From Ranitomeya imitator (lineage: Eukaryota), in assembly GCF_032444005.1 (NCBI RefSeq), contig NC_091283.1, forward strand, positions 27,032,001 through 27,096,000: a stretch of 64,000 nt of DNA, written 5' to 3'. The notes under the pieces were generated by a model, which worked only from the letters and a program-made list of their open reading frames with translations, did not search any database and had not been told where the DNA came from. A program made the position numbers and the translations under genes. This document shows, piece by piece, positions 1 through 54,619 of this stretch (positions within the stretch are counted from its first letter, which is position 1; each line of letters begins with the position of its first letter).

Positions 1-840
1 AAAAAAAAAAATATTATTCCCATAAATACATTTCTACATCTAAATAAGAAAAACAAACAATAAAAGTACACATATTTAGTATCGCCGCGTCCGTAACGAC
101 CCGACCAATAAAACTGGCCCACTAGTTAACCCCTTCAGTAAACACCGTAAGAAGAAGAAAAAAAAACGAGGCAAAAAACAACGCTTTATTATCATACCGC
201 CGAACAAAAAGTGGAATAACACGCAATCAAAAAGACAGATATAAATAACCATGGTACCGCTGAAAACGTCATCTTGTCCCGCAAAAAACGAGCCACCATA
301 CAGCATCATCAGCAAAAAAATAAAAAAGTTATAGTCCTGAGAATAAAACGATGCAAAAATAATTATTTTTTCTGTAAAATAGTTTTTATCGTATAAAAGC
401 GCCAAAACATAAAAAAATGATATAAATGAGGTGTCGCTATAATCGTACTGACCCGAAGAATAAAACTGCTTTATCAATTTTACCAAACGCGGAACGGTAT
501 AAACGCCTCCCCAAAAGAAATTCATGAATAGCTGTTTTTTGGTCATTCTTCCTCACAAAAATCGGAATAAAAAGCGATCAAAAAATGTCACGTGCCCGAA
601 AATGTTACCAATAAAAACGTCAACTCGTCCCGCAAAAAACAAGACCTCACATGACTCTGTGGACCAAAATATGAACAAATTATAGCTCTCAAAATGTAAA
701 AAGCGTCTTTCAGTGTGTGACGGCTGCCAATCATAAAAATCCGCTAAAAAACTCGCTATAAAAGTAAAACAAACCCCCCTTCATCACCCCCTTAGTTAGG
801 GAAAAATTAAAAAAATGTATTTATTTCCATTTTCCCATTA

Positions 841-2803: not shown

Positions 2804-5327
2804 TTACTTATTAAGTATTTTGTGTGACTGTGTTTTAATTGCATAAAAATTCAAATTTGGAAAATTGCGAAATTTTAATAATTTTCGCCAAATTTCCGTT
2901 TTTTTCACAAATAAATGCAGGTACTATCAAATAATTTTTACCACTATCATGAAGTACAATATGTCACAAGAAAACAATGTCAGAATCACTGGGATCCGTT
3001 GAAGCGTTCTAGAGTTATAACCTCATAAAGGGACAGTGGTCAGAATTGTAAAAATTGGCCCGGTCATTAACGTGCAAACCACCCTTGGGGGTAAAGAGGT
3101 TAAAGGAAAAATAAATCCAAACCTAAAGGGCCCTGTGTGAAAAAGTGATTGCCCCCTAAACCTAATAACTGGTTAGGCCACCCTTAGGCTTTTTCTTTTT
3201 TTTTTTTTTTTTACACATACCGTGTTTTTCCTGGCCGTTTTTGCAGCCCCAATAGATTTCTATGGGGCCGCAAAATCGGCCAGCAAAAATTCCACTGTGC
3301 TCCGTGTGCCCCATGGCCGTGAAGGCCGTATTTGCGGTCGTGAAAAAAGATCGAGCCTATTCGATCTTTTTCACGGCATATGGACATGGCCCCCATTGCA
3401 AATCAATGGGTGCCACAAAAACAGCGGAAGTTGTTTTTGCGGTGCACCGTCACTTCCGATTTTGTGGAACGCCGTTTTTATTTTCCAATACTTCGTCTTC
3501 CCCAATACTTCTTCTTCCCAATACTTCTTGCGACCCATTTTGCGGCGATATTGCCCGCAAAAAAGGCCCGCATTAACGGGCCGCAAAAAACACGGCAAGT
3601 GTAAAAGTAGCCTTAACAGCAACAACTGAAATCAAGCATTTGCGATAACTGGTAATGAGTCTTTTACAACGCTCTGGAGGAATTTTGGCCACTCATCTTT
3701 GCAGAATTGTTGTAATTCAGCCACATTGCAGGGTTTCCGAGCATGAACTGTATTTTTAAGGCCATGCCACAGCATCCTAGTCGGATTAAGGTCAAGATTT
3801 TGACTAGGCCACTCCAAAGTCTTAATTTTGTTTTTCTTAAGTCATTTAGAGGTGGATTTGCTGGTGTGTTTTGGATCATTGTTCTGACTCAAGTGTGTTT
3901 CAGCTTGAGATCACAAACAGATGGCCGGATATTCTTCTTCAGGATTTTTTGGTTGACAGCAGAATTCATGGTTCTATGTACCACAAGTCAAAACAGCCCC
4001 AGACCATCACATTACCATCACCATATTTTCCTGTTGCTATGATGTTCCTTTTCTGAAATGCTGTATTACTTATTAAGTATTTTGTGTGACTGTGTTTTAA
4101 TTGCATAAAAATTCAAATTTGGAAAATTGCGAAATTTTAATAATTTTCGCCAAATTTCCGTTTTTTTCACAAATAAATGCAGGTACTATCAAATAATTTT
4201 TACCACTATCATGAAGTACAATATGTCACAAGAAAACAATGTCAGAATCACTGGGATCCGTTGAAGCGTTCTAGAGTTATAACCTCATAAAGGGACAGTG
4301 GTCAGAATTGTAAAAATTGGCCCGGTCATTAACGTGCAAACCACCCTTGGGGGTAAAGAGGTTAAAGGAAAAATAAATCCAAACCTAAAGGGCCCTGTGT
4401 GAAAAAGTGATTGCCCCCTAAACCTAATAACTGGTTAGGCCACCCTTAGGCTTTTTCTTTTTTTTTTTTTTTTTACACATACCGTGTTTTTCCTGGCCGT
4501 TTTTGCAGCCCCAATAGATTTCTATGGGGCCGCAAAATCGGCCAGCAAAAATTCCACTGTGCTCCGTGTGCCCCATGGCCGTGAAGGCCGTATTTGCGGT
4601 CGTGAAAAAAGATCGAGCCTATTCGATCTTTTTCACGGCATATGGACATGGCCCCCATTGCAAATCAATGGGTGCCACAAAAACAGCGGAAGTTGTTTTT
4701 GCGGTGCACCGTCACTTCCGATTTTGTGGAACGCCGTTTTTATTTTCCAATACTTCGTCTTCCCCAATACTTCTTCTTCCCAATACTTCTTGCGACCCAT
4801 TTTGCGGCGATATTGCCCGCAAAAAAGGCCCGCATTAACGGGCCGCAAAAAACACGGCAAGTGTAAAAGTAGCCTTAACAGCAACAACTGAAATCAAGCA
4901 TTTGCGATAACTGGTAATGAGTCTTTTACAACGCTCTGGAGGAATTTTGGCCACTCATCTTTGCAGAATTGTTGTAATTCAGCCACATTGCAGGGTTTCC
5001 GAGCATGAACTGTATTTTTAAGGCCATGCCACAGCATCCTAGTCGGATTAAGGTCAAGATTTTGACTAGGCCACTCCAAAGTCTTAATTTTGTTTTTCTT
5101 AAGTCATTTAGAGGTGGATTTGCTGGTGTGTTTTGGATCATTGTTCTGACTCAAGTGTGTTTCAGCTTGAGATCACAAACAGATGGCCGGATATTCTTCT
5201 TCAGGATTTTTTGGTTGACAGCAGAATTCATGGTTCTATGTACCACAAGTCAAAACAGCCCCAGACCATCACATTACCATCACCATATTTTCCTGTTGCT
5301 ATGATGTTCCTTTTCTGAAATGCTGTA
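2804..5327 (+). repeat. Essentially perfect 1262-bp direct tandem duplication (2804-4065 and 4066-5327)
   Basis: Seven ORF pairs are identical at a constant 1262 offset (for example 3222/4484). Junction microhomology ttactt. Confidence 0.95.
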
Positions 5328-6090
5328 TTACTTCTACGTCAGATCTAATGGGACATAGACATTCCAGAAAGTTCAACTTTTGTCAGTCCATAAAGTATAA
5401 AGTATTCTCGCCAAAGTCTTGGGGATTATCAAGATGTTTTCTGGCAAAACTCAGATGAGCCTTTGCTCTCATTGCTCAGCAGTGCTTTTGGTCTTGGAAC
5501 TCTGCCATGCAGGCAACTTTTGCCCAGTCTCTTTCTTATGGTGGAGTCATGAACACTGACCCTAACTGAGGCAAGTGAGGCCTGCAGTTCTTTAGATGTT
5601 GTTGTGGGGTCTTTTTTGACCTCTTGGATGAGTTGTATCTGTGCTCTTGGGGTAATTTTGGTCGGCCACTCCTGGAAAGGTTCACTATTGTTCCATGTTT
5701 TCACCATTTGTGGAGAATGGCTCTCACTGTGGTTCATTCAAGTTCAAAAGTTTTATAAATGGCTTTATAACCTTTTCCAGACTGATAGATCACAATTACT
5801 TTGTTTCCCATTTATTCCAGAATTTCTTTGGATCGCAGCATGATGTTTAGTTTTTGAGGATCTTTTGGTTTACTTCATTTTGTCAGGCAGGTCCTATTTT
5901 AGTGATTTCTTGATTGAGAATAGGTATAGCAGTAACCAGGGCTGGGTGTGGCTAGTTGAACTCCGTTTCCCAAAGAACTCAATCTTTGTCTAATATTTAA
6001 ATTTGTTTGGTGATCCGAAACATTTAAGTGTGAAAAACATGAAAAAGAATAGGAAATCAGGAAGGAGGCAAACACTTTTTCACATAACTG
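3133..6090 (-). mobile_element. Degenerate Tc1-like transposon (partly duplicated, interrupted by a MITE)
   Basis: Termini (c)tgtgtgaaaaagtg and cactttttcacataactg|TA. Transposase remnants MEWPSQNLDLNP and TKITPRAQ..LIQEVKKDPTTTSKELQASL...IRKRLGK. Confidence 0.85.
3187..3612. mobile_element. PIF/Harbinger-type MITE inserted in the Tc1 (second copy at 4449-4874)
   Basis: 3-bp TSD TTA on both sides (ccc-TTA-ggct... and ...gtagcc-TTA-acag), with a palindromic internal sequence. Confidence 0.75.
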
Positions 6091-9556: not shown

Positions 9557-9941
9557 AGCACTTGGACAGAAAATACGCTCGTGGGAACGAGTCCTTACTT
9601 TCATACAACACTGGATACCCTTAGAATAAATGTCTGAAAGTCAAGCAGTCTGTTTTTTTCTTGTGAAGACCCCTGCTGTTAACAAGAACCCCAAAGAGCT
9701 ACAGGGTATTCTCAAAAGTTCCTGTCGCCAAAGCCAAGGATGGACAGGTTATAATTGGGCAATGAGAAAGAAATGGATTTTTGTCCTGAAGTCTGAGTGT
9801 TGACTGATGTATAATATGTGACAATAGATGTATGTTTTCTCTGGATATTGCAGTTAGAGTGGATCCCAGTTCCAGAGGATCCCCTCTCCCACCTCCCCCC
9901 AATCCCCAGAAGTAAATAATAGAGTATTTACCATTTCTAAC

Positions 9942-10153
9942 CTGTTTATGATGCTCTTGATTTGCGTGTCCTTCTCCATCTGCTGCTGCCGCAGCCTCTT
10001 CTCACTCTGCTCCAGGCGGGACTGATATTGCTGCAGCATTTTGCTTGTTTGCTCCTCCTGAGAGAGGAGACGGCGCTCATATTCTTCCAGCTTCCGGTTG
10101 GACATCAGGAGTCGCTCTTTCAAGGAGTAAATCTCCTCCTCATATTCCTTCAC
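9942..10153 (-). CDS. SYNGAP1: SYNGAP1 exon (about human exon 17): coiled-coil (trimerisation) region
   Basis: cttttag|GTG AAG GAA TAT ([30 protein letters not shown]...QIKSIIN) AG|gttaga; 212 nt. Confidence 0.95.
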
Positions 10154-14553: not shown

Positions 14554-14841
14554 CTGATGACAGCCAAAACTCAGTATTAATCTACATGACAAAACTTGAA
14601 GGACCAAGTTACTAAAGCAGTCATCCATCATTCAGTGTGAGCTAATTATTATGCAGATGTGTAAGTAGTCAGGACTTATTTTTATTGTAATGTTCTAAGT
14701 TGTCATTAGAGTTTCTAGGTTGCTGTGAGGTTGGCAGTATCTCACCCCAATAAACGGGTAAGTCTCTCACCCCAATAAACGGGCCAGTCTATGTTCCACT
14801 TTCTCTCCCTGTGCCATTCCCAACCCCTGGCCCCACTCTCA

Positions 14842-15105
<264 letters not shown>

Positions 15106-15451
15106 TTAAGAAAACACAACTTAAAAAATGATTAAAGTGCACCTCTCATCTACACACACTGAAGGCCGTGTCTATACCAAATTTGCTTTTAGTTAGTAGC
15201 GGACTTCATTATAGGTGCTAGGTACACTTTAAATGTAAAAGAAAAGGAAGCGGGAACACAGACTAACAAAGAGAAGGAAAATAGTTGTGAAGGCGAATAC
15301 AGTAGAAGTACAAGGATGGGAAACACAGAGGGGAAAGGACATTGTAACAGCACGAAGAGGGACAGGAGAGAAGTCAAATGTAATGGATAATGACTAACAT
15401 ATAATGTCTTATTCTGTTCCTGGAAATGACATCACATGACCAGACACTGAC

Positions 15452-15596
15452 CAATGGGAGTTGAAGACTTTGCAAAGCGCAAGTTCGCAGCACATCCTGA
15501 GATTGGCCTGGTGATCGGGCAGGGCAGAAGGCGGACAACGCATGGGGTCAACCTCGCAGTCCTCCTCTGATTCATACAGAGCCCGAATAAACTCAC
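15452..15596 (-). CDS. SYNGAP1: SYNGAP1 exon (about human exon 10): RasGAP
   Basis: cgaaag|GT GAG TTT ([18 protein letters not shown]...LCKVFNSH) TG|gtcagt; 145 nt, preceded by an 87-bp intron. Confidence 0.95.
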
Positions 15597-15683
15597 CTTT
15601 CGAAGGAGAATTAACAACATTAAGAAACATTGGGCATATGTAAAGATGATTTCTGCATACGTTTGAAGAAAGAACAGATTTAC

Positions 15684-15828
15684 CAATGGCTTCCTTGAGG
15701 TATCTCTGTCCTATCAGTTTCAGATATTCCTCTATGGCTTTAGTTGCAAGTGTGTTCTCACGGAGAATAAGGTGCTCTCTATCAAGGAAGCGATCAACCT
15801 CTGTCATAGCCATATCCGAGAGGAAGTC
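15684..15828 (-). CDS. SYNGAP1: SYNGAP1 exon (about human exon 9): RasGAP arginine-finger region
   Basis: cttctcag|GAC TTC CTC TCG ([48 protein letters not shown]) G|gtaaat; 145 nt. Confidence 0.95.
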
Positions 15829-19766: not shown

Positions 19767-21546
19767 CAGTGCCTTGCGAAAGTATTCGGCTCCCTGGAAC
19801 TTTTCAACGTTTTCCCACATATGCTTCAAACATAAAGATACCAAATGTAAATTTTTGGTGAAGAATCAACAACAAGTGGAACACAATTGTGAAGTTGAAC
19901 AAAATTTATTGGTAATTTTAAATTTTTGTGGAATTTCAAAAACTGAAAAGGGGCGTGCAATATTATTCGGCCCCTTTAACTTAATATTTTGTTGTGACAC
20001 CTTTTGCTGCGATTACAGCTGCAAGTCGCTTGGGGTATGTCTCTATCAGTTTATACATCGAGAGACTGAAATTCTTGCCCATTCTTTCTTGGCAAACAGC
20101 TCGAGCTCAGTGAGGTTACATGGAGATCGTTTGTGAACAGCAGTTTTCAGCTCTTTCCACAGATTCTCGATTGGATTGAGGTCTGGACTTTGACTTGGCC
20201 ATTCTAACACCTGGATACATTTATTTGTGAACCATTCCATTGTAGATTTTGCTTTATGTTTAGGATCATTGTGTTGTTGGAAGACAAATCTCCGTCCCAG
20301 TCTCAGGTCTTTTGCAGACTCCAACAGGTTTTCTTCAAGAATGATCCTGTACTTGGCTCCATTCATCTACCCATCAATATTAACCATCTTTCCAGTCCCT
20401 GCTGAAGAAAAGCAGGCCCAAACCATGATGCTGCCACCACCATGTTTGACAATGAGGATGGGGTGTTCAGAGTGATGAGCTGTGTTGCCTTTACGCCAAA
20501 CATCTCGTTTGGTATTGTTGCCAAAAAGTTTGATTTTGGTTTCATTTGACCAGAGCACCTTCTTCCACGATTGGTGTGTCTCCCAGGTGGCTTTTTGCAA
20601 ACTTTAAACAACACTTTTTATGGATATCTTTGAGAAATGGCTTTCTTCTTGCCACTCTTCCATAAAGGCCAGATTTGTGCAGTGTACGACTGATTGTTGT
20701 CCTATGGACAGACTGTCCCACCTCAGCTGTAGATCTCTGCAGTTCATCCAGAGCAGTGTTTCCCAAACTCCGGTCCTCACGGACCCCACAGGTCATGTTT
20801 TCAGGATTTCTTTAGTATTGCGCAAGTAGTGGAAGTATCATCAAGGCATCAGGAATTGTCTCACTTGTGCAACACTATGGAAATCCTGAAAACATGACCC
20901 ATGGGGTCCGTGAAGACTGGAGTTTGGGAAATACAGATCTAGAGTGATCATGGGCCTCTTGGCTGCATCTCTGATCAGTCTTCTCCTTGTTTGAGATGAA
21001 AGTTTAGAGAGACGGCCGGGTCTTGGTAGATTTGCAGTGGTATGATACTCATTCCATTTCAATATGATCGCTTACAGTGTTCCTTGGGATATTTAAAGTT
21101 TTGGAAATCATTTTATATCCAAATCCGGCTTTAAACTTCTCCACAACAATATCACGGACCTGCCTGTTGGGTTCCTTGGTCTTCATGATGCTCTCTGTGC
21201 AGGTGCATTTATAAGGAGACTTGATTAAACCCCGGTGGATTATATTTATCATCATTAGGCATTTAGGACAACATTGGATCATTCAGAGAACCACAATGAA
21301 CTTCTGGAGTGAGTTTGCTGCACTGAAAGTAAAGGGGCTGAATAATATTGCACGCCCCACTTTTCAGTTTTTGAATTTCCACAAAAATTTTAAATAACCA
21401 ATAAATTTCGTTCAACTTCGCAATTGTGTTCCACTTGTTGTCGATTCTTCACAAAAAATTTACATTTGATATTTTTATGTTTGAAGCATGATATGAGGGA
21501 AAAGGTTGAAAAGTTCCAGGGAGCCGAATACTTTCACAAGGCACTG
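19767..21546 (-). mobile_element. Tc1-like transposon (long-TIR type), degenerate DD34E transposase
   Basis: TA|cagtgccttgcgaaagtattcggc ... gccgaatactttcacaaggcactg|TA. ORF pieces [32 protein letters not shown]...[15 protein letters not shown]. Confidence 0.92.
20754..20936. mobile_element. hAT-Charlie-type MITE inserted in the Tc1 transposase
   Basis: TIR cagtgtttcccaaactcc. The 8-bp TSD atccagag/atctagag resembles the NTCTAGAN Charlie target. Confidence 0.8.
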
Positions 21547-23432: not shown

Positions 23433-24368
23433 TTAAACACAATATCCGTTTAATTTAAAAAAAAATAAATGGAGAAAAAAAAATTGCGTGGGCTCCCGCA
23501 CAATTTTCAAGCTCAGGGAGGGAAAGCCAGCGACTAGGGGCCGATATTTGCAGCCTGGGAAGGGGTTAATACCCATGGAGCTTCCCAGGCTATGAATATC
23601 AGCCCGCAGCTGTCTGTGTAGCCTTTACTGGCTATTAAAATAGGGGGACCCCCCTAAAAAAGCAACGTGGGGTCCCCCTAGAATTTATAGCCAGAAAGGT
23701 TAGGCAGACAGCTGCGGGCTGATATTCATAGCCTAGACAGGGGCAATGGATATTGCCCCCCGGCTACAGATACCAGCTCCCAGCCGCCCCAGAAATGGCA
23801 CCTATTCCGGCACTTAGCCTCTCTCTTCCCACTGCCCTGTAGCGGTGGCGTATGGGGTAATAAGGGGTTAATGTCACCTTTGGATTGTAAGTCTATAAAG
23901 ACACAGATGATTGGCCTCGGGGAGACCAAAACATCCAACACCGCGGAGACACCATCACGTGTTTCTCAACGCAGTGATTCCAGAACACTGCCCCCATCCC
24001 TTATGGGAAATATGCAGATGCATGTAAAGAAGCTGCGGAGACACCATCACGTGTTTCTCGACGCAAGCAGTGAATAGCCAGGCCTTTCCCCGGGAAGGAA
24101 CAACCACGGGAAGGGCAGCATCCTATGAAGGAAAGCCACCTATGCCAAGCATGGTATCCATCCACAGACAGCTGTTTCGGGGTTTCTTTACATGCATCTG
24201 CATATTTCCCATTCCCATAAGGGATGGGGGCAGTGTTCTGGAATCACTGCGTTGAGAAACACGTGATGGTGTCTCCGCGGTGTTGGATGTTTTGGTCTTC
24301 CCGAGGCCAATCATCTGTGTCTTTATAGCCTTTTTACTAGGCACTGCTCCTAATAGCCAGATTCCTAC

Positions 24369-24413
24369 TCCACACTGATGAGGGGCAAAAACCCCGAAAC
24401 AGCTGTCTGTGGA
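24369..24413 (+). ncRNA. Type I hammerhead ribozyme, unit 1 (predicted cleavage after 24407)
   Basis: TCCACA-CTGATGA-GGGG-CAAAAA-CCCC-GAAA-CAGCT-GTC-TGTGGA. Confidence 0.92.
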
Positions 24414-24721
24414 TGGATACCATGCTTGGCATAGGTGGCTTTCCTTCATAGGATGCTGCCCTTCCCGTGGTTGTTCCTTCCCGGGGAAAGGCCTGGCTAT
24501 TCACTGCTTGCGTCGAGAAACACGTGATGGTGTCTCCGCAGCTTCTTTACATGCATCTGCATATTTCCCATAAGGGATGGGGGCAGTGTTCTGGAATCAC
24601 TGCGTTGAGAAACACGTGATGGTGTCTCCGCGGTGTTGGATGTTTTGGTCTCCCCGAGGCCAATCATCTGTGTCTTTATAGCCTTTTTACTAGGCACTGC
24701 TCCTAATAGCCAGATTCCTAC

Positions 24722-24766
24722 TCCACACTGATGAGGGGCAAAAACCCCGAAACAGCTGTCTGTGGA
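24722..24766 (+). ncRNA. Type I hammerhead ribozyme, unit 2 (cleavage after 24760)
   Basis: Identical motif at +353. Confidence 0.92.
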
Positions 24767-25074
24767 TGGATACCATGCTTGGCATAGGTGGCTTTCCTTC
24801 ATAGGATGCTGCCCTTCCCGTGGTTGTTCCTTCCCGGGGAAAGGCCTGGCTATTCACTGCTTGCGTCGAGAAACACGTGATGGTGTCTCCGCAGCTTCTT
24901 TACATGCATCTGCATATTTCCCATAAGGGATGGGGGCAGTGTTCTGGAATCACTGCGTTGAGAAACACGTGATGGTGTCTCCGCGGTGTTGGATGTTTTG
25001 GTCTCCCCGAGGTCAATCATCTGTGTCTTTATAGCCTTTTTACTAGGCACTGCTCCTAATAGCCAGATTCCTAC

Positions 25075-25119
25075 TCCACACTGATGAGGGGCAAAAACCC
25101 CGAAACAGCTGTCTGTGGA
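25075..25119 (+). ncRNA. Type I hammerhead ribozyme, unit 3 (cleavage after 25113)
   Basis: Identical motif at +706. Confidence 0.92.
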
Positions 25120-25427
25120 TGGATACCATGCTTGGCATAGGTGGCTTTCCTTCATAGGATGCTGCCCTTCCCGTGGTTGTTCTTTCCCGGGGAAAGGCCT
25201 GGCTATTCACTGCTTGCGTCGAGAAACACGTGATGGTGTCTCCGCAGCTTCTTTACATGCATCTGAATATTTCCCATAAGGGATGGGGGCAGTGTTCTGG
25301 AATCACTGCGTTGAGAAACACGTGATGGTGTCTCCGCGGTGTTGGATGTTTTGGTCTACCCGAGGCCAATCATCTGTGTCTTTATAGCCTTTTTACTAGG
25401 CACTGCTCCTAATAGCCAGATTCCTAC

Positions 25428-25472
25428 TCCACACTGATGAGGGGCAAAAACCCCGAAACAGCTGTCTGTGGA
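25428..25472 (+). ncRNA. Type I hammerhead ribozyme, unit 4 (cleavage after 25466)
   Basis: Identical motif at +1059. Confidence 0.92.
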
Positions 25473-25780
25473 TGGATACCATGCTTGGCATAGGTGGCTT
25501 TCCTTCATAGGATGCTGCCCTTCCCGTGGTTGTTCCTTCCCGGGGAAAGGCCTGGCTATTCACTGCTTGCGTCGAGAAACACGTGATGGTGTCTCCGCAG
25601 CTTCTTTACATGCATCTGCATATTTCCCATAAGGGATGGGGGCAGTGTTCTGGAATCACTGCGTTGAGAAACACGTGATGGTGTCTCCGCGGTGTTGGAT
25701 GTTTTGGTCTCCCCGAGGCCAATCATCTGTGTCTTTATAGCCTTTTTACTAGGCACTGCTCCTAATAGCCAGATTCCTAC

Positions 25781-25825
25781 TCCACACTGATGAGGGGCAA
25801 AAACCCCGAAACAGCTGTCTGTGGA
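25781..25825 (+). ncRNA. Type I hammerhead ribozyme, unit 5 (cleavage after 25819)
   Basis: Identical motif at +1412. Confidence 0.92.
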
Positions 25826-26133
25826 TGGATACCATGCTTGGCATAGGTGGCTTTCCTTCATAGGATGCTGCCCTTCCCGTGGTTGTTCCTTCCCGGGGAA
25901 AGGCCTGGCTATTCACTGCTTGCGTCGAGAAACACGTGATGGTGTCTCCGCAGCTTCTTTACATGCATCTGCATATTTCCCATAAGGGATGGGGGCAGTG
26001 TTCTGGAATCACTGCGTTGAGAAACACGTGATGGTGTCTCCGCGGTGTTGGATGTTTTGGTCTCCCCGAGGCCAATCATCTGTGTCTTTATAGCCTTTTT
26101 ACTAGGCACTGCTCCTAATAGCCAGATTCCTAC

Positions 26134-26179
26134 TCCACACTGATGAGGGGCAAAAACCCCCGAAACAGCTGTCTGTGGA
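26134..26179 (+). ncRNA. Type I hammerhead ribozyme, unit 6 (one extra C in stem II or loop II; cleavage after 26173)
   Basis: TCCACA-CTGATGA-GGGG-CAAAAAC-CCCC-GAAA-CAGCT-GTC-TGTGGA. Confidence 0.88.
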
Positions 26180-27839
26180 TGGATACCATGCTTGGCATAG
26201 GTGGCTTTCCTTCATAGGATGCTGCCCTTCCCGTGGTTGTTCCTTCCCGGGGAAAGGCCTGGCTATTCACTGCTTGCGTCGAGAAACACGTGATGGTGTC
26301 TCAGCAGCTTCTTTACTTTGGATTGTAAGGTGATATTAAGCCCGGTTAGTAATGGAGAGGCATCAATAAGACACCTATCCATTACTAATCCTATAGTAGT
26401 GAGTTAAAAAAAAGACACAACCATAAAAAAGTATTTTAATATTCTTAATTTCCCCATACTTACAACCACGCCTAATTCCCCGAAGCCTTCAATCGCCTGC
26501 AAAAAATAAAAAATAATAAACCAACCGTATACTCCCTGCCCGACGCAGTCCAATTAATAACGAATGTCCCACGATGATCTCCCCTATAGACTGGTCACCT
26601 CAGGAGATGTGACAAATCTATAGACCTTCAGTGACACACTGACAGGAGACAATGGCTCCTGCAGTGTTATCATTGAGGGTTTAATGAGTTCATTGCTCTC
26701 ACTTTACGGCACTGCTGCATGAGAATTTTCCCACGCAGCTGTGCCGCAAGTGACAGTATGAACTTTACTGTACTCACAGCGGCGGAGGGATACAGTGCGG
26801 AAGGATACCTTCCGTCACTGTATCACCGAAGCCCCTGGAGAGCGGTAGCATCTGTTGATGTGACAGCTCTCCACAGGAGATTGTCGTGGGACACTCGTTA
26901 TTACATGGACTACTGCGTATCAGGGAGTATATTGTTGGTTTATTATTTTTATATTTATTACAGGAGAATCAAGGGCTTCAGGGACAAGGTGATTGGTGAG
27001 TATGTACTCTATGTTTTATGTTGTATGTACATATGTGTATACTGTCTGTACTCTATGTGTGTATGTGTTTTTTTTTTTACACTTGAACACAGTAGCCGGA
27101 TGACTATACTGTCCCATCATCCGGCTAGCTGTCACTGTAGCAGGCATAACCGGATGGGACTAGAAGTTCCATCGGACGATGCCTGCCTACGTACAGACCC
27201 GCACACACACAGCCCCGCACATCCCTGCACAGCACCGCAGACCCCCACACAGCTCCACAGACCCGCACACAGACACACACATAGCTCCGCAGACACAGAC
27301 AAAAGCACACAGAGACGCACATCTTCCACGCACACACACACAGTCTCCGCTCACAGTCTTTGCCCACATACTCTTCCCCCTCCCGATCTGCATTTCTCGC
27401 ACCCAACTCTGCAGCAAAACCGCAGATCCTACGGTTTTGCTGCAAATTTGACTGAATCAATGGAAGTCAATGGGTGCAGAAACGCTGCAGATCCGCACAA
27501 AGAATTGACATGGTCCTTTTTTTAATCTGCAGCATTTTCGGTGTGGATTTTTCCACACCATTAGCACAGCGGTTTTTTCCCCCATTGATTTACATTTTCT
27601 GTGCTGAAAAAAAAACCGATGCGGATCCGCAGGAAATCCGCAACGTGTGCACATAGCCTAATTGTTATTTTGTGGGGGATGATTTAATTATTGAACGCTG
27701 CAGAGCGTGTAAGGAAGGATTACTTCCTGACGCTGCCAGTGCCAGAATGTACTTTGTATGTAGAGTCAGCATGCTTTGTGCTTCAGTCTCACTTAAAACA
27801 ATGACAGCAGCAATGGCGCAAGCCGCTCCTATGATGTTT

Positions 27840-28960
27840 ATGCCCCAGCGTCTCCTGTGAAGTATATGCTCCAGCCCCTCCTGTGATGTATATGCCTCAG
27901 CATCTCCTGTGATGTATATGCCCAAGCATCTCGTGATGTATATGCGCCCACAGTATCTCCTGTAATGTGTATGCCTCAGCCACTTGTGCGATGTATATGC
28001 CCCAGCCTCTCCTGTGATGTACATGCCTCAGGCCCTCCTGTGATGTATATGCGCTAACTTCTCCTTTGATGTGTATGCTGCAGACCCAGTGTCTCCTGTG
28101 ATGTATATGCTCCAGCATTTCCTGAGATGTATATGTCCCAAAGCCTCCTGTGATGTGTATGCCACAGACCCAACATCTCCTGTTAATATGCCTCAGCGTC
28201 TCCTGAGATATGAATGCCCCTGTCTCCTGTGATATAGATGTCCCATGCCCCAGCATCTCATGATGTATATACGCCCCAGCATCTCCTGTGATGTATATAT
28301 GCCCCAGCATCTCATGTGATGTATATGCCCCAGCATCTCATGTGATGTATATGCCCCAGCATCTCATGTGATGTATATGCCCCAGCATCTCATGTGATGC
28401 TTATTCCCCAGCATCTCCTGTGATGTATATGCCCCAACATCTCATGTGATCTATATGCCGCAGGCTAAGCATCTACTTTGATGTGTATGCCCCATGTCCC
28501 AGCACCTCCTGTGATGTATATTCCCCAGTGTCTCTTGTGATGCATATATGCCCTAGCGTCTCCTGTGATATGTATTCCCCCAGTGTCTTCTGCAATGTAG
28601 ATGCCCCACTGTCTCCTGTGATGTATATTCCCCAGTATCTCCAGTGATGTATATATCCTACTATCTCCAGTGTATATCCCCCAGCATCTACTGTGATGTA
28701 TATGCCCTAGCCTCTTTTGTGATGTATATGCCCCAAGCGTCTCATGTGATGTATATGCCTCATCTCTAGTGTATCCTATGTTATGTATATACTCCAGTCC
28801 TAACATCTCCTGTGTAATGCATATCTTCCATCACCTCCTATATGATGTATATGGTGCAGATCAGGAGTCTCCTATGATTTATATTCTCCAGCCCCAGTGT
28901 CTCCTGTATGATGTATATACCGCAGTCTCGGTATCTCCTATGTGATGTATACTACAGACC
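27840..28960. repeat. Degenerate minisatellite of about 25 bp (gcatctcctgtgatgtatatgcccca)
   Basis: Dozens of variant units, near-perfect at 28290-28400. Confidence 0.9.
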
Positions 28961-32581: not shown

Positions 32582-35500
32582 CTAAAATGGTGGAATAAGG
32601 GAAGGTAGGAGGGGTTTCAGTTCAAAGCATGGTGGGAGTTAGTAAAAGGGGGTGTGAATGGGGCCATTTGATTGGTTAAGGGGACCTTGTATATAAGGGA
32701 GGATTGGAAGAGGCAGGGACAGTCTGTTAGATGTGAGTCAGGGACACAGTACCATGATGGAGGCTCTATTCCACGACTTTAAGAAGCTGGCAGAGACAAA
32801 GAGCACAGCATGGCTGCAGGAGCAGTTGCATCTGTTGAGTGGCAGCAGCGGCAGATCAGCTGTGGACCCAATGCCCCCAAAACGCCCTAGGAGGTCGAGG
32901 CCTTTTGAGAAAGTGAGCCCTGAACTGCAATCTAGGGCGCGGAGGAAGGCGGGGAGTCAATGCAGAGACCATCCGAGTTGGGATGTGAGCAGCTGGGAGA
33001 AGCAGGAGGCCTTGAATCCATGCCGGAAGTCTGCTCCGATTGCAAGCATACGTACGAGCCGGGAGGTAATGTCATCTTATGGTGTGAACGTGGCGGCGAT
33101 ATGCAGAAAGATGAGGTAACGGGGCGTCAGGAAGAAGAACAGGGAAGTGGCTGTAGTATCCGGGGAGTGAGGACCTGAGCGTGCAGTCCAGCGCTCTGCC
33201 TCCTTGGGAGGATGGAGCGTGGAGACTGGCCAAGGAAATGGAGAAAAGACCGAGAGGGCACCTGCTGCACCGCACAGGGGCAACAAAAGAGCAAGAAGCA
33301 GATGAGCTGTAGGACATAGGTAAGACGGATCGGTAGGGGAGGATTGATGGCTGCAGGCGTGCAGCTGAAGTGCCTTCCACCACCGCAGGGACTAAGGACA
33401 GTCGCAACACTCACGCAATAAGGGCCGAGGGGTTCTTGGTTGCTGGGGCATCGGCGGTGGAGTCTGAGAAGGGTCTGGCATCTACAGAAGAATCAGAGGA
33501 GGACCAGCAGGGTAGATACGCAGCGGCCGTTCTAAGGGGGGGCAAGAAGTTGGGCCGGTAAGCATTGAGGTCACTGTAAGGCAGCGAGTGGTTGTAAGAT
33601 GGGTGGCGAGCGACAGGTTGTGCCTGAGGAGTCGGCAGGGAGCGAGGTGTCACAGTTGTTGGGAATGATGCGTTAATTGATGGGCATGGCTAGGTCTTCC
33701 CCAGCGGCGGTGTGGCAAGGGGGTGGGCCACACATGGCGAAAATGGCTACAGTGGGGTGGCAAGTGATACTCAGGGTGGGGCCCCGCTTGAGGGGGCCCC
33801 CCCAGAGTCGGAAAGTGCGGTATTGACCCAGTGAGACTGGATAATAAAGCTCAGGGGGTAGTATATGTGTGTTTTCATAGGCCATTGGGTGCACATTTAA
33901 AAACGGAGGTGAAACAGAAGATATGGAGGGATGAATATGTATATTTTTTTGCTTTTGCCATAGAATAAGTTTAATTTGGACAGGGTGAAGTTGACGGAGA
34001 GTAAAAAAGAGGAAGAGGAAAGGCGGAGGTATTAGTTGATGCCCCGAACTTTTGCCAACTGGCTGCAGGTGTTCTCTATATTGGCTAGGGTGTGGGGCGA
34101 AAAAGACCCCGGAAAGTGTTCTTTTCTTTTTTGCTATCTGGATAGTATCTGGGAGGCTTGTCGTGGGACTGATTGGTTGCGGTACGACGAACAGTTTAGG
34201 CAAAGGAAGGCAGTTCGTCCAAGTTTGAGATAACAAGGGCATAAGTTTATGGATGCGTTTAATGTCGGCACCGAGAGTGTTGCTGTCTTCCTTTCTTGGG
34301 ACCACCAGGGTACCAGATAGTTCAGGGGCACCACCGGTGGGAGCCAAGAAGGGTTTGTGTTGGTGCTTTAATGAGAAGAAATGTACTTTTACGTCCTGTA
34401 GGTTTAAGCACAAATGTTCCGTGTTCCGGTTGCGGAGTACACCACAGCTTCAGTGTTTTAAGAGAGGAAAGGGAAAGCCTGGGGAAGCTGCGGTTAAGAG
34501 AGACGACTCCGGTGAGGGTACAGCAGATGGAGCAGTATTTAAATAATTACCCTGATACGGAGGCAGAATGTTTGTTGAAGAGAGGTTTTCGTTTTGGTTT
34601 CAAGATCCCTTCGGTTGTGAAGGATCGGTTTTGGTTCGGAATTTGAAGTCTGCTATGGAGCAACCGGAGTTAGTTGGTCAAACATTGGGTAAAGAAGTGG
34701 AGTTGGGCAGGATGGCCAGTCCATTTCGGGAATTACCGCATTTAAAGATTTCTCCTTTGGGTTTGGTCCCAAAGAAGGAACCAAATAAGTAATCAGTTGA
34801 TACACCATCTATTGTACTCAGAGGGGGAGTCGGTCAATGATGGCATTGATCCATAGTTGGTCTTGGTGTCTTATGTGTCATTCAATAAGGCGGTGGAATG
34901 GGTAAGGCGGTGTGGTCAGGGTGCACTATTGGCCAAGAGGGACATAGAGGTGGTTTTTTGATTGTTGCCGTTCATCCCGACAGTTTTCACCTGTTGGGCT
35001 GTTTTTGGGAAGGACATTATTACGTTGATTATTGTTTGGCCATCGGTTGTTCTATCTCATGTGCATATTTTGAGAAGTTTAGTTCCTTTTTGGAATGGGT
35101 GGTTTGCACGGAGGCAGGAGCAGATTCTATTATTCACTATCTTGATGATTTTTTGTGTATTGGACCAGCTAGATCTTCGATGTGTGCAATATTATTGCAA
35201 ACAATGGAACAAGTAGCGGAGAGGTTTGGGATTCCTTTGGCAGCAGAGAAGACTGTGGGTCCAACCACCACACTGTGCTTTCTGCGCATTGAGATAGATA
35301 CGGTGTTGATGGAATGTAATTTGCCACTTGAGAAGCTGGAGAATTTGAAAATGGTCATACAGGAGGTGTTGGGAGCCAGCAAGATTCGGTTGTGCCAGTT
35401 GCAATCTTTACTGGGAAAATTCAATTTTGCATGCAGGATTTTACCCATGGGAAGAATATTTACCTGGAGGGTGGCTGTAGCAACGGCGGACGCGACTCGC

Positions 35501-37583
35501 CCAAGACATTTTATTTGGTTGAATGCAGGGCAGAAAGCAGATTTACACGTGTGGGAGCAGTTATATTGGAAGATCGGTGTGGATGGACGAGGCTGACAAT
35601 GTTGACTTGGAGTTGGTTATGGATGCAGCAGGATCATTGGGATTTGGAGCCTATTTTCAAGGCAAACGGTTGGCCGGGAAGTGGCCGGATGAGTGGAGAG
35701 TTAATGGGCTGACAAAGAATTTTGTGGTCTTAGAGCCATTCCCTATTGTGGCAGCCGTGAAAGTGTGGGGGGAGCCTTTGCGAAACAAGGTGAGGTATTT
35801 GTGTGATAACATGAGTGTGGACTACCAGAGTATTAATCGCTTGTCAGCTCATTCTCCTCCTGTGGTGAACTTGATGCGTCACTTGGTACTTTGATGCTTG
35901 CATTTGAATGTATGGTAGAGGGCGACGCATGTCCCAGGAGTCAAAAATTCCATTGCTAATGCAATTTCTCGCTTTCAGTGGGGTCTGTTTTGGAAGCTGG
36001 CGCCTCAGTCAGAGCAGCACAGAACACAATGGCCGGCGAGCTTATGGAATCTGGTATCAGATCAGCAATGAGGTTGATTACGGAATCGGTGGCTCCTGGG
36101 ACATGGCATCGATATAATTCGGTGTGGGACTACTGGTATAGAGTGAAGGTGAGTATGGGGAGTTGTTAGTCAGATGACGATAGAGTGAATCTGTTGTTAT
36201 ACATGATCAGCAGGTCATGTGAGGAAGGGGTGTTGGTGTTGAATGGTCAAATGGCAGCAGTGGCATTTTTGTTCAAATTGTCTGGCGTGAAAGACGTTAC
36301 CAAGGCTTTTGTGATACGACAAGCTTTGAAGGGGTACAGGAAAGGAAGGGTGGTTCAGGATTGGAGGCATCCGATCTCATTTCATATGTTGGGTAGACTG
36401 TGTTCGAAAATGTGTCGGTCAAAATATGAGACATTACTGTTTCAGACGGCTTTTAGTTTAGCTTTCTTTGGCGTGTTTCGAATAACCGAATTAGTGAGTA
36501 AGAATTGTTTGCAATTCCATGATGTGGTATGTGAACCCAGGGTTATCCGTGGTATACTTCAGAGGTCAAAGACAGATATCTATAGCAAGGGTTGTATGGT
36601 GGAACTGTGGGTGGTGGAAGGATTAATGGAGTGTATATAGAACGTCTCAATTTTTGTTGGTAAAGGGCGATGCCGGAGGTTCTTTATTAATTCATCAGGA
36701 TGGTTTGGCTCTGTCTAAATTCCAGTTTATACCCATATTCAAGAGGTGCTTAGGTTCGATTGACATGGATGATTCTAAATTCAGTTCCCATTTATTTTGT
36801 ATCGGGGCAGCAACAGAAGCTGCCAGGTGGGGCCTTAATGCAGCAGCGGTGTGCAAGATTGGGAGATGGAATCGTTATGTTTTGCATCATATTTCCGTGC
36901 AGGAGTGCTGGATGTTTACCAGTGGCAAAGGGTTTTTTTAGCCTGTGGGGTTGCAAGTTACAATTTTGATTGTTTTTTTTTTTTACAGATGGTCCGCTGT
37001 TGGTGTGGGTGATAGGACACTTGTAGGTGGTGTGGGGAGATTTACAGGCTGACGTCAGACCATCCGGCTGGCAGCTTGGGTTAAGACAAGATGAAGTAAC
37101 AGTCAGGTGGATTGGGATTAGCAGAATGCTCTGGTCCAGGTTGGTCCAGAATTGTATTTTCATGTGGGTTTGGACAGACCCCTGGATGTTTTATTGATTC
37201 ACGTGGGGGTAATGATTTGGGGGTCTGCACTTCCAGGGATTTGGTTCGGGACATTAAGTTTGACTGTTTGTGGCTCATGGCTGCTCACTCGGTGATGGTC
37301 ATTGTTTGGTACAATATTGTGGCTCTTTTGGCTTGGAAATATGGTCGCTCAGTGGAACTCATAAATAGGGCCCGGATTAAGGTGAATCGGGAGGCGTTAT
37401 GTTTTTTGGCTAGGAATGGGGCGTTGGTAGTGCGGCATCGTGATCTGTGAGTGCCCTCCAGGCAGCATTTACGTCGGGATAGGGTGCATTTGACACCTAT
37501 CGGTAGATATCTGGGCGCTGGGTTTGAGAGAGGGTTAATAGAAGGCTGTTAAGGTGTGGAAGGACATTCATGCATAAGGTGTC

Positions 37584-41208: not shown

Positions 41209-42793
41209 TTAAGAAAAATGTGGACTAGGCGGGGCCACATGAGTGCATAAAAATCTGTCCCATTCTCGTGCAGAAAAGGGGGTACATTTTTGTCACTTGT
41301 CATACGTGTGCTGTCAGTGTGCAATCCATTTTTTTACTCAGCAGCTATTAATCTTGTACAGGACCCTTCATAATTTCCTTACAGAACTGCAATGTATCCA
41401 TAAAAATCGGATGCCATACTGTATGGTATCCGATTTTATTTCTCGCACCCATGCGATTTCGGTATTAAACCACAGAATTTTGTAATTTTTTTCATGCCGA
41501 ATACAGCTGAGAAAAAAAAATATGCAGATCTGCACTGTCTCATTAAATAGCACTGGTCAGAGTGAAATCCTTTTTTATTGGATTGCACTCATCTGATTTA
41601 TATGCTTTTATGAGCGAGCCCTTACTCTTTTGCAGATGTTAATGTATCATTTCATACAACTTTCTGTGACCTGCATGTCCATGAAGACAGTTAAGGGGGT
41701 TGATCCAACTGACATATTCCCTTTAGTAAATAATTAGATTATAGCCATCATTTCTATCTGTAGGACATTATGGGAACAATGCATAATTTCTACTTTTCTT
41801 AGTCTTAGCAAGGTGGGACAACGAAAAAAATTAACTGCAACAGTAACCTGTCACGTGCTATCCTATCTGTGGGAATCATGTTATAAAGCAGGAGAAGCTA
41901 ATTAGACTAATATAGGGGTTTGTGAGAAAATTTTAAGTATGTATTTTTTAAATTTAGATCCCTGCTCATTCTGGGATGAGAGTCCAGTGGATGGTCCTAA
42001 TTAGTTGCTGAGAGCCTACAGGAGGCCCCTACTAGGCTACTAAGCCCAAAATGAGCAAGGGTGTTCATTACGTGATATACTAAATCTTCTACAAAACTAC
42101 ATATCAATGAGTTTCACAAATACATTTTTTGGTGCTTACTATATGTCCCACTCTGCAGACTAAAAACCTAAATCTTGTAGAGACTCAGATTCAATACATG
42201 AAATAAAAAGGTGAAAAAAAAGGATTCAAGTCAACCCCACCAGTACTACTATACTTTGGCATTATAGTCATTATCCATGTTCCCTGCACTTTTTGCTAAG
42301 AATTTGTTACAATGGTGACTAATATTTATATATATTATATAAAGTGCCTTGCTGGTGAACTACATAATTTAAAGGAACACTATAGAAATTTACTATAAAG
42401 GCAGACCATGCAGCTACAGTAGGGCCCTTGCAGTAAGGATGCCTACCATGGATGGTCCTATCCTCTTTGCTACTGTGCAGCAAAAAATCTTGTATTGTTA
42501 CCAAATAAGCTGGGGGTGAATTGTCCCAATAAATATTAAAATGGTTTGGGGATGTGACGAGGACACGAGATTCTTCTACTCTAGATGGCAAGACTCATCA
42601 ATATAATGAGGACCTACTTGGATCCTTTCTATAGAACTCCTCAACCTTCTTTATATGTCATTAATTAAGACACCACTTGGTCTAGGCTTATCTTAATACC
42701 ATGTAACCATTACCAGCTTACCATCTACCATGCAACTCCAATTCCCAGTTCTGACACATAAGTACATGCAAACATATCTGTAAATCTGTATAC

Positions 42794-43348
42794 CTTAGCC
42801 TTCCCCGTGCTTTGTAATATATGTACCAACGCACAGGCCACCTCCTCTTTGCTCTTCACGCTCAGCACTGGCTCCAGCACAGCACACAACATCCGGTAGT
42901 TGTTGGTCACATATTCTGCAAATTCCTTATACAGCTCCATGGGGAGGATGCTCATAGTTTGGTATCGGGACTTTAGGCGGATGGAGGGACAGCTGCTCTT
43001 TCCTTTGTAGGATGTGGGCTGGGAGACTGGGTACCACTGCTCCACAAAATGGCGTCCGCTGATGCTGGCGATGGGCACGTTCACCATGCCCACATAGTTG
43101 CTCTTCTCTTTGCGCCTCTTTTTATCTGTGTCCTTATACAGGTGGAGGCGTAGGTTTCGGACAGCCGGCAGGTTGTTAAACTCAAAATGCTCCCCCCAGA
43201 AAACGGTCTCACCCCGGGCTTTGCTGGTGGTACGGGCATACAAAATGTCATCCAGGCAGAGCTCGCAGTAATAGCGCTTCTTGGGGGGAAGTTCACGAGC
43301 TTCAATTATCCACAACTTGAGGACATTATCCACTCTTCGACTGTTATC
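42794..43348 (-). CDS. SYNGAP1: SYNGAP1 exon (about human exon 8): C2 domain and start of RasGAP domain
   Basis: Acceptor ctttgtag|GAT AAC AGT ([10 protein letters not shown]...) and donor GCT AAG|gtatac (...STGKAK); 555 nt, phase 0-0; ORF 42725..43333. Confidence 0.96.
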
Positions 43349-49290: not shown

Positions 49291-50441
49291 AACCTGTATG
49301 TATAGGTCACATAAGATACACTTAGTCTCTGCTATACAGTATCTCAACAACTCGATCCAATATAGTATCTCTCTACAACCTGTCTCTATACAACATTTCC
49401 CAACAATAAACTGCTTCCCTAGGAGTTAAAACTCAGAAAGAACTTGGTGGTGCAACAAATCCATATACAATAGTTGTAAAAAAATGTATTTAAATTCATT
49501 AAAATATTCAACACAAAAAAGCAATACACCCTAGTGAATAATGTCCACCAAACAATACAAAACTATGTCAAAGTGAACAAGAGACTAAAGCATCAAAGAT
49601 GATTTAAAAGCAAAATTTATTTTAAATAATCTATAAAACCGAAAAACTGACAACAGAACTGTACAATATCATATTACAAAAAATGATAAGTGTAGAAAAC
49701 AGATCCAAATAATATAATAAAAGATACCAGACAAAATGTACTCCAGGGGAGAAAACCCACATATACAGCTATAATGAGCCGACTGCTATGTTTGCTAATG
49801 ACAGGTGTTATGAAGACAATCCAGAAACACAGTGTGCTTAGCGATCAGTGCGCACACAGTGATCTGACAAATACCCAAAAATACAAGAACGAGCTCTGAG
49901 ACGTGGAAACTCTGTAGACTGCACACCTGATCCTATCCTAAACACAACTAAAAGCGGCTGTGGATTGCGCCTAACAACTACCTAGGCAACTCGGCACAGC
50001 CTAAGAAACTAGCTAGCCTGAAGATAGAAAAATAGGCCTGACTTGCCCCAGAGAAATTCCCCAAAGGAAAAGGCAGCCCCCCACATATAATGACTGTGAG
50101 TAAGATGAAAAGACAAAACGTAGGGATGAAACAGATTCAGCAAAGTGGGGCCCGATATTCTAGGACAGAGCGAGGACAGTAAAGCGAACTTTGCAGTCTA
50201 CAAAAAACCCTAAAGCAAAACCACGCAAAGGGGGCAAAAAAACCCACCGTGCCGAACTAACGGCACGGCGGTACACCCTTTGCGTCTCAGAGCTTCCAGC
50301 AAAACAAAAGACAAGCTGGACAGAAAAAAAGCAACAAAAAATCAAAAAGCACTTAGCTATACAGAGCAGCAGGTCACAGGAACAATCAGGAGAAGCTCAG
50401 ATCCAACACTGAAACATTGACAATGAGGAAGGATAGCAGCA

Positions 50442-54191: not shown

Positions 54192-54619
54192 TTCCTAAAT
54201 TTCTGACAATATACTTCTATATCATCCTGACCCTGGCACAAAGCCAGCAAATTTTTCTCAGCCTGATCCACTGAATTAGGCTCATCGTACAGCAATCCGA
54301 GCGCCAGGAAAAACGCATCGACACTACTCAATGCAGGGTCTCCTGGCGCAAGAGAAAATGCCCAGTCTTGAGGGTCGCCGCGCAAAAAAGAAAAAATAAT
54401 CAAAACCTGTTGAATAGGATTACCAGAAGAATGAGGTTTCAAGGCCAGAAATAGCTTACAATTATTTTTGAAACTTAGAAACTTAGTTCTATCTCCAAAA
54501 AACAAATCAGGAATAGGAATTATTGGTTCTAACATAGATTTCTGATCAATAGTATCTTGAATTTTTTGTACATTTATAACGAGATTATCCATTGAAGAGC
54601 ACAGACCCTGAATATCCAT
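54180..54619 (-). CDS. Gypsy Gag N-terminal part (retrotransposon capsid domain), frameshifted relative to the long ORF
   Basis: ORF 54083..54676 contains PDLFFGDRTKFLSF...SFLRGDPQDWA...LCQGQDDIEVYCQKFRKW. The start is inferred at MDIQG. Confidence 0.8.

Follow-up and report, generated by a model that had tools for sequence, protein, structure and literature searches.

A 353-bp hammerhead retrozyme array in a SYNGAP1 intron of Ranitomeya imitator, probably inserted as multimeric cDNA by Penelope-type target-primed reverse transcription

We analyzed a 64,000-nucleotide stretch of Ranitomeya imitator DNA (contig NC_091283.1, positions 27,032,001 to 27,096,000; hereafter the window), in which a 2.4-kb block of repeated, hammerhead-bearing DNA lies within an intron of SYNGAP1. 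This block is probably a single insertion of a retrozyme lacking long terminal repeats (non-LTR), laid down as multimeric cDNA by Penelope-type target-primed reverse transcription on both nicked strands of the target. We read the retrozyme as a non-coding, non-autonomous dependant of Penelope-like elements (PLEs) that carries a canonical metazoan type I hammerhead in each 353-nt unit. In animals, retrozymes are known to give rise to abundant small circular RNAs, and the case for linking them to PLEs is based mainly on co-occurrence and sequence similarity. The young insertion described here provides a clean anatomical example: the target-site duplication (TSD) is long, the 5' copy is inverted, the units are whole in number, poly(A) is lacking and both cDNAs cross the ribozyme cleavage site.

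The whole block consists of a 297-bp inverted partial unit followed by six head-to-tail direct units, set between 14-bp TSDs (Table 1). Tandem Repeats Finder reported the direct array with a period of 353, 6.0 copies, 99% matches and a score of 4161, and its alignment contains practically no indels; a repeat search of the window agreed, giving six copies at 353-bp spacing. A preliminary description of this DNA had placed a six-unit, 353-bp array at 23892-26315. Its unit count and period stand, whereas its start does not, as the direct array begins only at 24184 and the region 23889-24185 is inverted; the inverted left 297 bp, the 14-bp TSD and the antisense orientation to SYNGAP1 had all been missed. 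In the repeat search, the inverted copy measures 297 nt and is 99-100% complementary to 24389-24685, with 1 mismatch (by blastn, 99.6% over 278 nt, plus 19 nt), and it holds only the 3' half of the hammerhead, without the CUGAUGA box. It shares 3 nt (AAG) with the TSD and 2 nt (TT) with the direct array, and overlaps at the junctions range from 1 to 3 nt. The repeat search revealed no LTR-like terminal repeats around the element, which has no LTR, primer-binding site, polypurine tract or coding capacity, and a poly(A) or simple-repeat tail is absent from its 3' end. The sole open reading frame (ORF) of the repeat is a 101-aa antisense frame that recurs in each unit, the unit length not being a multiple of 3; a coding role for it was rejected, as no Pfam domain was found in it.

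The perfect 14-bp TSD, CTTTGGATTGTAAG, lies exactly at the two outer edges of the inverted copy plus array, has a GC content of 36%, contains ATT and exceeds the 4 bp of plant retrozymes. As perfect 14-bp TSDs bracket the whole block, the block arrived as one piece. The insertion lies in another, very abundant repeat (the host repeat, 23492-23891 and 26316-26950), which was also found in sequencing runs. All searches of such runs were made on assembled contigs, whose depth is not copy number and which reveal no ends, strand or circles of an RNA; no run is on record as RNA, and the label 'RNA' attached to runs is a guess. In the source run, where the summed contig depth of the host repeat is in the hundreds of thousands, 21 contigs of its paralogous copies pass directly from 23891 into the sequence after 26329. 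Several host-repeat contigs skip approximately 2447-2462 bp, and one uninterrupted copy was found in an organism that we denote B. Since these paralogues are uninterrupted, the target-site duplication is real.

We next consider the ribozymes. The 33-nt string running from the catalytic core to the cleavage site, CTGATGAGGGGCAAAAACCCCGAAACAGCTGTC, occurs in five exact copies on the plus strand (at 24375, 24728, 25081, 25434 and 25787) and 0 times in 100 dinucleotide shuffles. A sixth core, at 26140, has one additional C on the 3' side of helix II, and a script scan of both strands of the whole 64-kb window found no hammerhead cores beyond these six. The core CTGATGA...GAAA and the GUC cleavage triplet are exact in five units, and the sixth carries the 1-nt insertion. 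Helix I comprises 6 bp (TCCACA/TGTGGA) and helix II 4 bp (GGGG/CCCC), while helix III is reduced to 2 bp (A-U, C-G) and a palindromic tetraloop, AGCU. With reporting by E-value, Rfam matched the five identical hammerheads best to Hammerhead_HH9 (RF02275), over the full model length (24.3 bits, E 0.0065), with the catalytic core, the UAC bulge of helix I, the 4-bp helix II and the CAAAAA loop on consensus positions; the UAC bulge and the CAAAAA loop 2 are the nucleotides of the tertiary contact. The layout matches that of canonical metazoan type I hammerheads (PMC4209133, Cervera and de la Pena). These searches agree with the preliminary description on the GUC triplet, the 6-bp stem I with its UAC bulge, the 4-bp stem II with its 6-nt loop and the short palindromic stem III. 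Its claim of a complete hammerhead in every unit applies to five of them; the sixth, with its extra C, went unreported by Rfam at E<=10 and is possibly impaired. The predicted cut sites were also computed correctly and lie at intervals of 353, 353, 353, 353 and 354 nt.

Folding energies fit a ribozyme that depends on dimers, as had been proposed. For the 60-nt motif alone, the best predicted fold is an inactive alternative in which CUG of the core pairs with CAG of helix III (-19.2 kcal/mol), and the catalytic single hammerhead reaches -14.0 kcal/mol. When two copies were co-folded, the minimum free energy (MFE) structure was a double hammerhead with an 8-bp helix III, ACAGCUGU (-43.9 vs 2 x -19.2 kcal/mol). 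A 461-nt two-unit transcript has an MFE of -170.0 kcal/mol and, with the double hammerhead forced, -169.2 kcal/mol, a gap of 0.8 kcal/mol. The linear 353-nt monomer folds at -133.8 kcal/mol (z = -3.9), with the helix I strands closing the molecule, and the circular 353-nt monomer has an MFE of -128.3 kcal/mol. If the plus strand is transcribed, neighboring hammerheads would thus be expected to pair through the palindrome and form double hammerheads. Dimer-dependent cleavage has been demonstrated experimentally for axolotl and newt elements, and amphibian retrozymes combine such hammerheads with circularisation by RtcB (PMC7229834).

To the structure of the array, the alignment of its units adds a record of its history. 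Differences from the unit consensus amount to 6 single-base changes, a 6-nt duplication in unit 1 and an extra C in unit 6, and all 6 substitutions and 2 indels are private to single units (~0.3% divergence), which means that the units were identical or nearly so on arrival. The low unit divergence and the perfect TSD make the insertion young; if its neutral rate resembles that of vertebrates, we would roughly place its age on the order of one to a few million years. The private changes also bear on a different history, in which a monomer or dimer, perhaps a 5'-truncated PLE tail, was inserted and six units arose later by unequal crossing-over or slippage. Local growth of this kind is the route favored in the 2026 Xenopus preprint, where 75% of families have <=7 units (bioRxiv 10.64898/2026.07.22.740005), and it is compatible with a whole-number unit count, since unequal crossing-over preserves the phase of both ends. 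However, later duplication predicts changes common to neighboring units and none were seen, the TSD encloses the inverted copy together with the array, and PLEs are known to insert as tandems (PMC8557442). We consider later growth improbable.

Two side observations concern the sequence of the unit itself. On the hammerhead-sense strand, every one of the six private substitutions replaces a C (three C>T and three C>A; chance ~3e-4 given 25% C), and the lone mismatch of the inverted copy, read in unit sense, is C>A as well. The pattern suggests errors or damage from the RNA/cDNA stage or from plus-strand transcription, rather than ordinary two-strand decay. In addition, a 31-nt direct repeat, TGCGTYGAGAAACACGTGATGGTGTCTCCGC, is present twice per unit (e.g. 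at 24509-24539 and 24601-24631), at a spacing of 92/261 nt; both copies include a CACGTG E-box and have a predicted hairpin fold, and the repeat may be a protein-binding or promoter element.

The edges of the insertion, with unit positions numbered from the hammerhead cleavage site, bear on how it was copied. The direct array amounts to six whole units plus a few bases, and both of its ends fall inside the octamer TTCTTTAC, a terminal redundancy of only 8 nt vs the 30-40-bp 'tail' of PLEs. The chance of the 5' end lying within 7 nt of the 3' phase is ~4%. Both the direct and the inverted segments cross the hammerhead cleavage site, so the template was not a cleaved linear monomer, but an uncleaved multimer or a religated circle. 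The TSD, the inverted and direct cDNA, the lack of a tail and the continuity across the cleavage site mark a single insertion event.

This anatomy, which limits the template to those two forms, is the signature expected of a PLE enzyme priming on both strands. PLEs insert as partial tandems, often preceded at the 5' end by an adjoining copy that is inverted and 5'-truncated (PMC8557442), and purified PLE protein from Anolis nicks and extends both target strands, begins reverse transcription at internal RNA sites downstream of the hammerhead without target homology, has a preference for AT-rich targets and can insert without cleavage by the ribozyme (PMC11167929). Retrozymes are found together with PLEs, whose pseudo-LTRs they resemble (PMC7761336; bioRxiv 10.64898/2026.07.22.740005), and those of Xenopus derive from such pseudo-LTRs (bioRxiv 10.64898/2026.07.22.740005). 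Under the mechanism that we favor, retrozyme RNA of plus sense, in the form of an uncleaved multimer or of a ligated circle, would have been copied by the reverse transcriptase (RT) / GIY-YIG endonuclease of a PLE, which would have nicked the target strands with a stagger of 14 bp. The cDNA primed by the bottom-strand nick would have begun at unit position 142/143, downstream of the cleavage site by 142 nt, and given the six units, the top-strand nick would have primed a second cDNA at unit position ~274-278 to give the inverted copy, and the two cDNAs would have been joined via a 2-nt overlap. Here we infer the priming at two T-rich decamers, the identity of the enzyme and the nature of its template.

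The whole-number unit count favors a circular template on which the enzyme stalled at its own start; alternatively, the transcript may have had its 5' end at that phase, or the count may be plain chance. It is possible, if on balance rather unlikely, that the locus preserves the trace of rolling-circle reverse transcription, in which a Penelope-like enzyme copied a circular 353-nt retrozyme RNA onto both nicked strands. This idea arises because the bottom-strand cDNA runs for exactly six turns, from 142/143 to 136-138, where the enzyme would come upon the point from which it had begun; because a similar GCYTYTTTAC motif marks the start of the top-strand cDNA, which ends in the GC-rich helix II; and because both cDNAs cross the cleavage site. 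If it is true and other insertions have the same pattern, they would be the first structural evidence for circles, in place of linear multimers, as the template for transposition, and the 353-bp family would carry a defined reverse-transcription start motif.

The same retrozyme could instead have been mobilised by a long interspersed nuclear element (LINE) of the L1, L2 or CR1 type through classical twin priming, of which TSDs of ~14 bp and 5' inversions are L1 hallmarks and with which the 1-3-nt microhomologies at the junctions agree. We regard this as very improbable: the 3' end bears no poly(A) or microsatellite tail, such hammerheads and retrozymes co-occur with PLEs and resemble pseudo-LTRs (PMC7761336; bioRxiv 10.64898/2026.07.22.740005), and extension of both strands is within the in vitro repertoire of the PLE enzyme (PMC11167929). 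A DNA-level event (reintegration of extrachromosomal circular satellite DNA) or an assembly artefact of the inverted/tandem structure is more improbable still, for although structures of the PLE type are known to trouble assemblies (PMC8557442) and the source run contains many antisense/sense foldback joints, the perfect TSD, clean junctions and private mutations indicate a real locus, and contigs agree with the flanks.

Several points weigh against a PLE-mobilised retrozyme. No matches were obtained anywhere in the window at Rfam gathering thresholds, and the gathering score of HH9 is 52 bits, compared with 24.3 here, a shortfall traceable to the truncated helix III and to distal helix I; the Rfam check of the hammerheads failed at the gathering threshold, and five copies matched below it. 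An intact motif is also no guarantee of activity, since in vitro cleavage was obtained in only 1/9 Xenopus retrozyme dimers (bioRxiv 10.64898/2026.07.22.740005). The GC content of the unit is 51.3%, a marginal miss of the <50% reported for metazoan retrozymes. The two putative reverse-transcription starts lie 135 nt apart, not 30-40 nt as for PLEs, and the number of units may have changed after insertion by unequal crossing-over. Furthermore, the ORF list of the window contains no Penelope-like ORF and no RT/GIY-YIG ORF, and the runs are all assembled contigs with a guessed 'RNA' label. Set against these, a unit size within the ~150-450 bp of non-LTR retrozymes, a hammerhead in each unit, the short helix III, the non-coding sequence, the long TSD and the many copies all speak for the retrozyme or satellite-2-like identity that the preliminary description had proposed.

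Table 1. Coordinates of the insertion, its edges and ribozymes, and the SYNGAP1 coding features in the window.
Feature	Position	Strand	Basis or remark
Left TSD copy CTTTGGATTGTAAG	23878..23891	.	Perfect 14/14 direct repeat with 26316-26329
Inverted, 5'-truncated partial unit	23889..24185	-	Reverse complement of unit segment 24389-24685
Direct array, 6.0 units of 353 bp	24184..26316	+	Tandem Repeats Finder, repeat search, unit alignment
Right TSD copy	26316..26329	.	Repeat search; paralogous contigs
Direct array 3' end	unit position 142/143		Decamer GCTTCTTTAC
Direct array 5' end	unit position 136-138		Decamer GCTTCTTTAC, within octamer TTCTTTAC
Inverted copy start, beside left TSD	unit position 274-278		Decamer GCCTTTTTAC, 8/10 identical to GCTTCTTTAC
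Inverted copy end	unit position 335		Within GC-rich helix II
Hammerhead 1	24363..24417	+	Helix I TCC-TAC-TCCACA / TGTGGA-T-GGA; predicted cleavage after C24407; HH9 24.3 bits
Hammerhead 2	24716..24770	+	Identical to hammerhead 1; predicted cleavage after 24760
Hammerhead 3	25069..25123	+	Identical to hammerhead 1; predicted cleavage after 25113
Hammerhead 4	25422..25476	+	Identical to hammerhead 1; predicted cleavage after 25466
Hammerhead 5	25775..25829	+	Identical to hammerhead 1; predicted cleavage after 25819
Hammerhead 6, variant GGGG-CAAAAA-CCCCC	26128..26183	+	Extra C after helix II; predicted cleavage after 26173
SYNGAP1 exon, C2 domain and start of GAP domain	42725..43333	-	Rat SynGAP PDB 3bxj, E 2.4e-96; Pfam C2
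ORF with next SYNGAP1 exon, RasGAP	15409..15813	-	Pfam RasGAP
RasGAP	14839-15066	-	Pfam
DAB2P_C coiled-coil region	9854-10153	-	Pfam

The unit belongs to a widespread family, and the further copies that had been anticipated were found as matching contigs in the source run, in other runs and in organisms B and C. The source run yielded thousands of matching contigs at 90-100% identity, a count that includes the flanking host repeat, and other runs yielded hundreds of variant contigs, with a family identity of 85-100% across the runs of several studies. In runs guessed to be RNA, the unit occurs at high word depth and contigs extend across the cleavage site, the type of molecule being uncertain. 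Organisms B and C contributed contigs of 383 nt (353+30) and 362 nt, with 1 mismatch each (99.7% identity); 383 nt is the length expected of a cyclic unitig for a 353-nt unit at k=31, and these contigs indicate that units are joined head to tail in both organisms too. Exact scans with the 33-nt hammerhead string gave 0 matches in metagenome contigs and 0 in viral contigs. Near-identical units had been taken as the mark of a young family; youth holds for this insertion and not uniformly for the family, which is, judging by the diverged contigs, larger and older than the insertion, with many diverged copies in the genome.

Other contigs reveal variation around the same sequence. Some match only the hammerhead core (~24373-24408) and diverge on both sides, with loose ends at 24373, 24380 and 24408/24409, which implies that other repeat families or Penelope-like elements carry the same ribozyme in the source and a related organism. 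The source run also contains many switches from antisense to sense at near-mirror-image positions (e.g. joints 23992>24214 and 24141>24422), with offsets of ~10-40 nt. Foldback junctions at such varied places suggest that inverted 5' copies are common in the 353-bp family.

The location in a SYNGAP1 intron, as originally assigned, is supported by similarity to rat SynGAP and by the Pfam domains C2, RasGAP and DAB2P_C (Table 1): the element lies in an intron of ~27 kb between the C2 exon and the first RasGAP exon. The exons are on the minus strand, and the hammerheads are antisense to the gene. Consequently, SYNGAP1 pre-mRNA carries the inactive complement and is not cut by the ribozymes, and plus-strand RNA needs its own or an antisense promoter; co-transcription with SYNGAP1 was rejected for the same reason. 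A direct effect on SYNGAP1 is unlikely given this orientation, the exception being intronic double-stranded RNA (dsRNA) from the inverted repeat. The inverted copy and the matching segment of the first full unit (24389-24685) form a 297-bp inverted repeat with a 203-nt spacer, which would fold into a long dsRNA hairpin on either transcribed strand, SYNGAP1 pre-mRNA included. Such a hairpin might serve as a substrate for ADAR or Dicer, and small RNAs directed at the element's family might arise from it.

The remainder of the window is rich in other repeats. The host repeat contains a 40-nt palindromic hairpin at 23587-23734, with a sub-threshold match to a plant microRNA precursor, and is probably akin to miniature inverted-repeat transposable elements; just downstream of it lies a 26-bp minisatellite (27826-28759, ~35 copies, 71% identity). 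A Ty3/gypsy-type LTR retrotransposon on the minus strand (50191-55382) has an intact 1249-aa protease-RT-RNaseH-integrase-chromodomain ORF (50442-54191), a gag-like ORF (54083-54676) and near-identical terminal repeats, whose 73-aa ORFs (50191-50412 and 55161-55382) differ in a single residue, and is probably young. By ORF appearance, a candidate DIRS-type retroelement occupies 34250-36950 on the plus strand (RT-like, 34898-35596; tyrosine-recombinase-like, 36185-36941). Identical ORF sets 1262 bp apart (3222-3629 and 4484-4891) represent a tandem duplication or adjacent repeat copies, and Tc1/mariner-like transposase remnants occur as several broken frames (20046-21282, 61990-62866 and 5429-5737).

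We compared the element with known systems. The Rfam model HH9 (RF02275), an intronic amniote hammerhead, has in common with it the core, the UAC bulge, the 4-bp helix II and the CAAAAA loop, but has a longer helix III and represents a single conserved intronic copy rather than a repeat. With PLEs the insertion shares the partial tandem with an inverted 5'-truncated copy, the extension of both target strands (PMC4209133, PMC8557442, PMC11167929), a hammerhead upstream of an internal reverse-transcription start and an AT-rich target. It differs from them in that the element has no RT/GIY-YIG ORF, no 30-40-bp tail was recognised, and the hammerhead is canonical, with tertiary-contact loops, not of the minimal PLE type. 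Newt satellite 2 (Epstein & Gall 1987, cited in PMC7229834) is likewise a tandem repeat of ~330 bp with a type I hammerhead that acts as a dimer and has a minimal helix III; that satellite is caudate and forms long arrays, whereas the array considered here is a short, dispersed insertion flanked by a TSD, and we liken the two by architecture.

Axolotl Rtz331 and Rtz353 are likewise amphibian, with 330-353-nt units, a weak helix III and dimer-dependent cleavage (PMC7229834, Cervera & de la Pena 2020). The helix III found here, 2 bp with a palindromic tetraloop, resembles that of HHR_Amex2, and the CAAAAA loop 2 resembles that of the Ax330 hammerhead. The equal 353-nt length of Ax353 is probably coincidental, the non-ribozyme parts being unlike in a comparison made by eye only. 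The axolotl RNAs are proven in tissues in linear and circular form, whereas the present element is known from DNA and assembled contigs.

Among anurans, thousands of hammerheads have been described in X. tropicalis (PMC4209133), and 57 retrozyme families in X. tropicalis, X. laevis and X. borealis (Li, Clavereau & Pollet 2026, bioRxiv 10.64898/2026.07.22.740005). The novelty for anurans that the preliminary description had left open is thereby settled: the element is not new in kind. Nothing relevant was found in the literature on frog or toad retrozymes beyond Xenopus. The Xenopus non-LTR retrozymes likewise form tandem arrays, usually of <=7 units, with a mean unit of ~316 bp and a type I hammerhead per unit; ~43% of the copies lie in introns, PLE dependence has been proposed for them, and we liken them to the present element by architecture, not sequence. 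A single locus is no discovery by itself, but one data point in a genome very rich in such elements, and its contribution is modest: with a kind of retrozyme already known in anurans, only the explicit insertion architecture goes slightly beyond the cited papers. The Xenopus preprint reported no TSDs or inverted 5' copies and favored local expansion, whereas at this locus the boundaries of the insertion are explicit.

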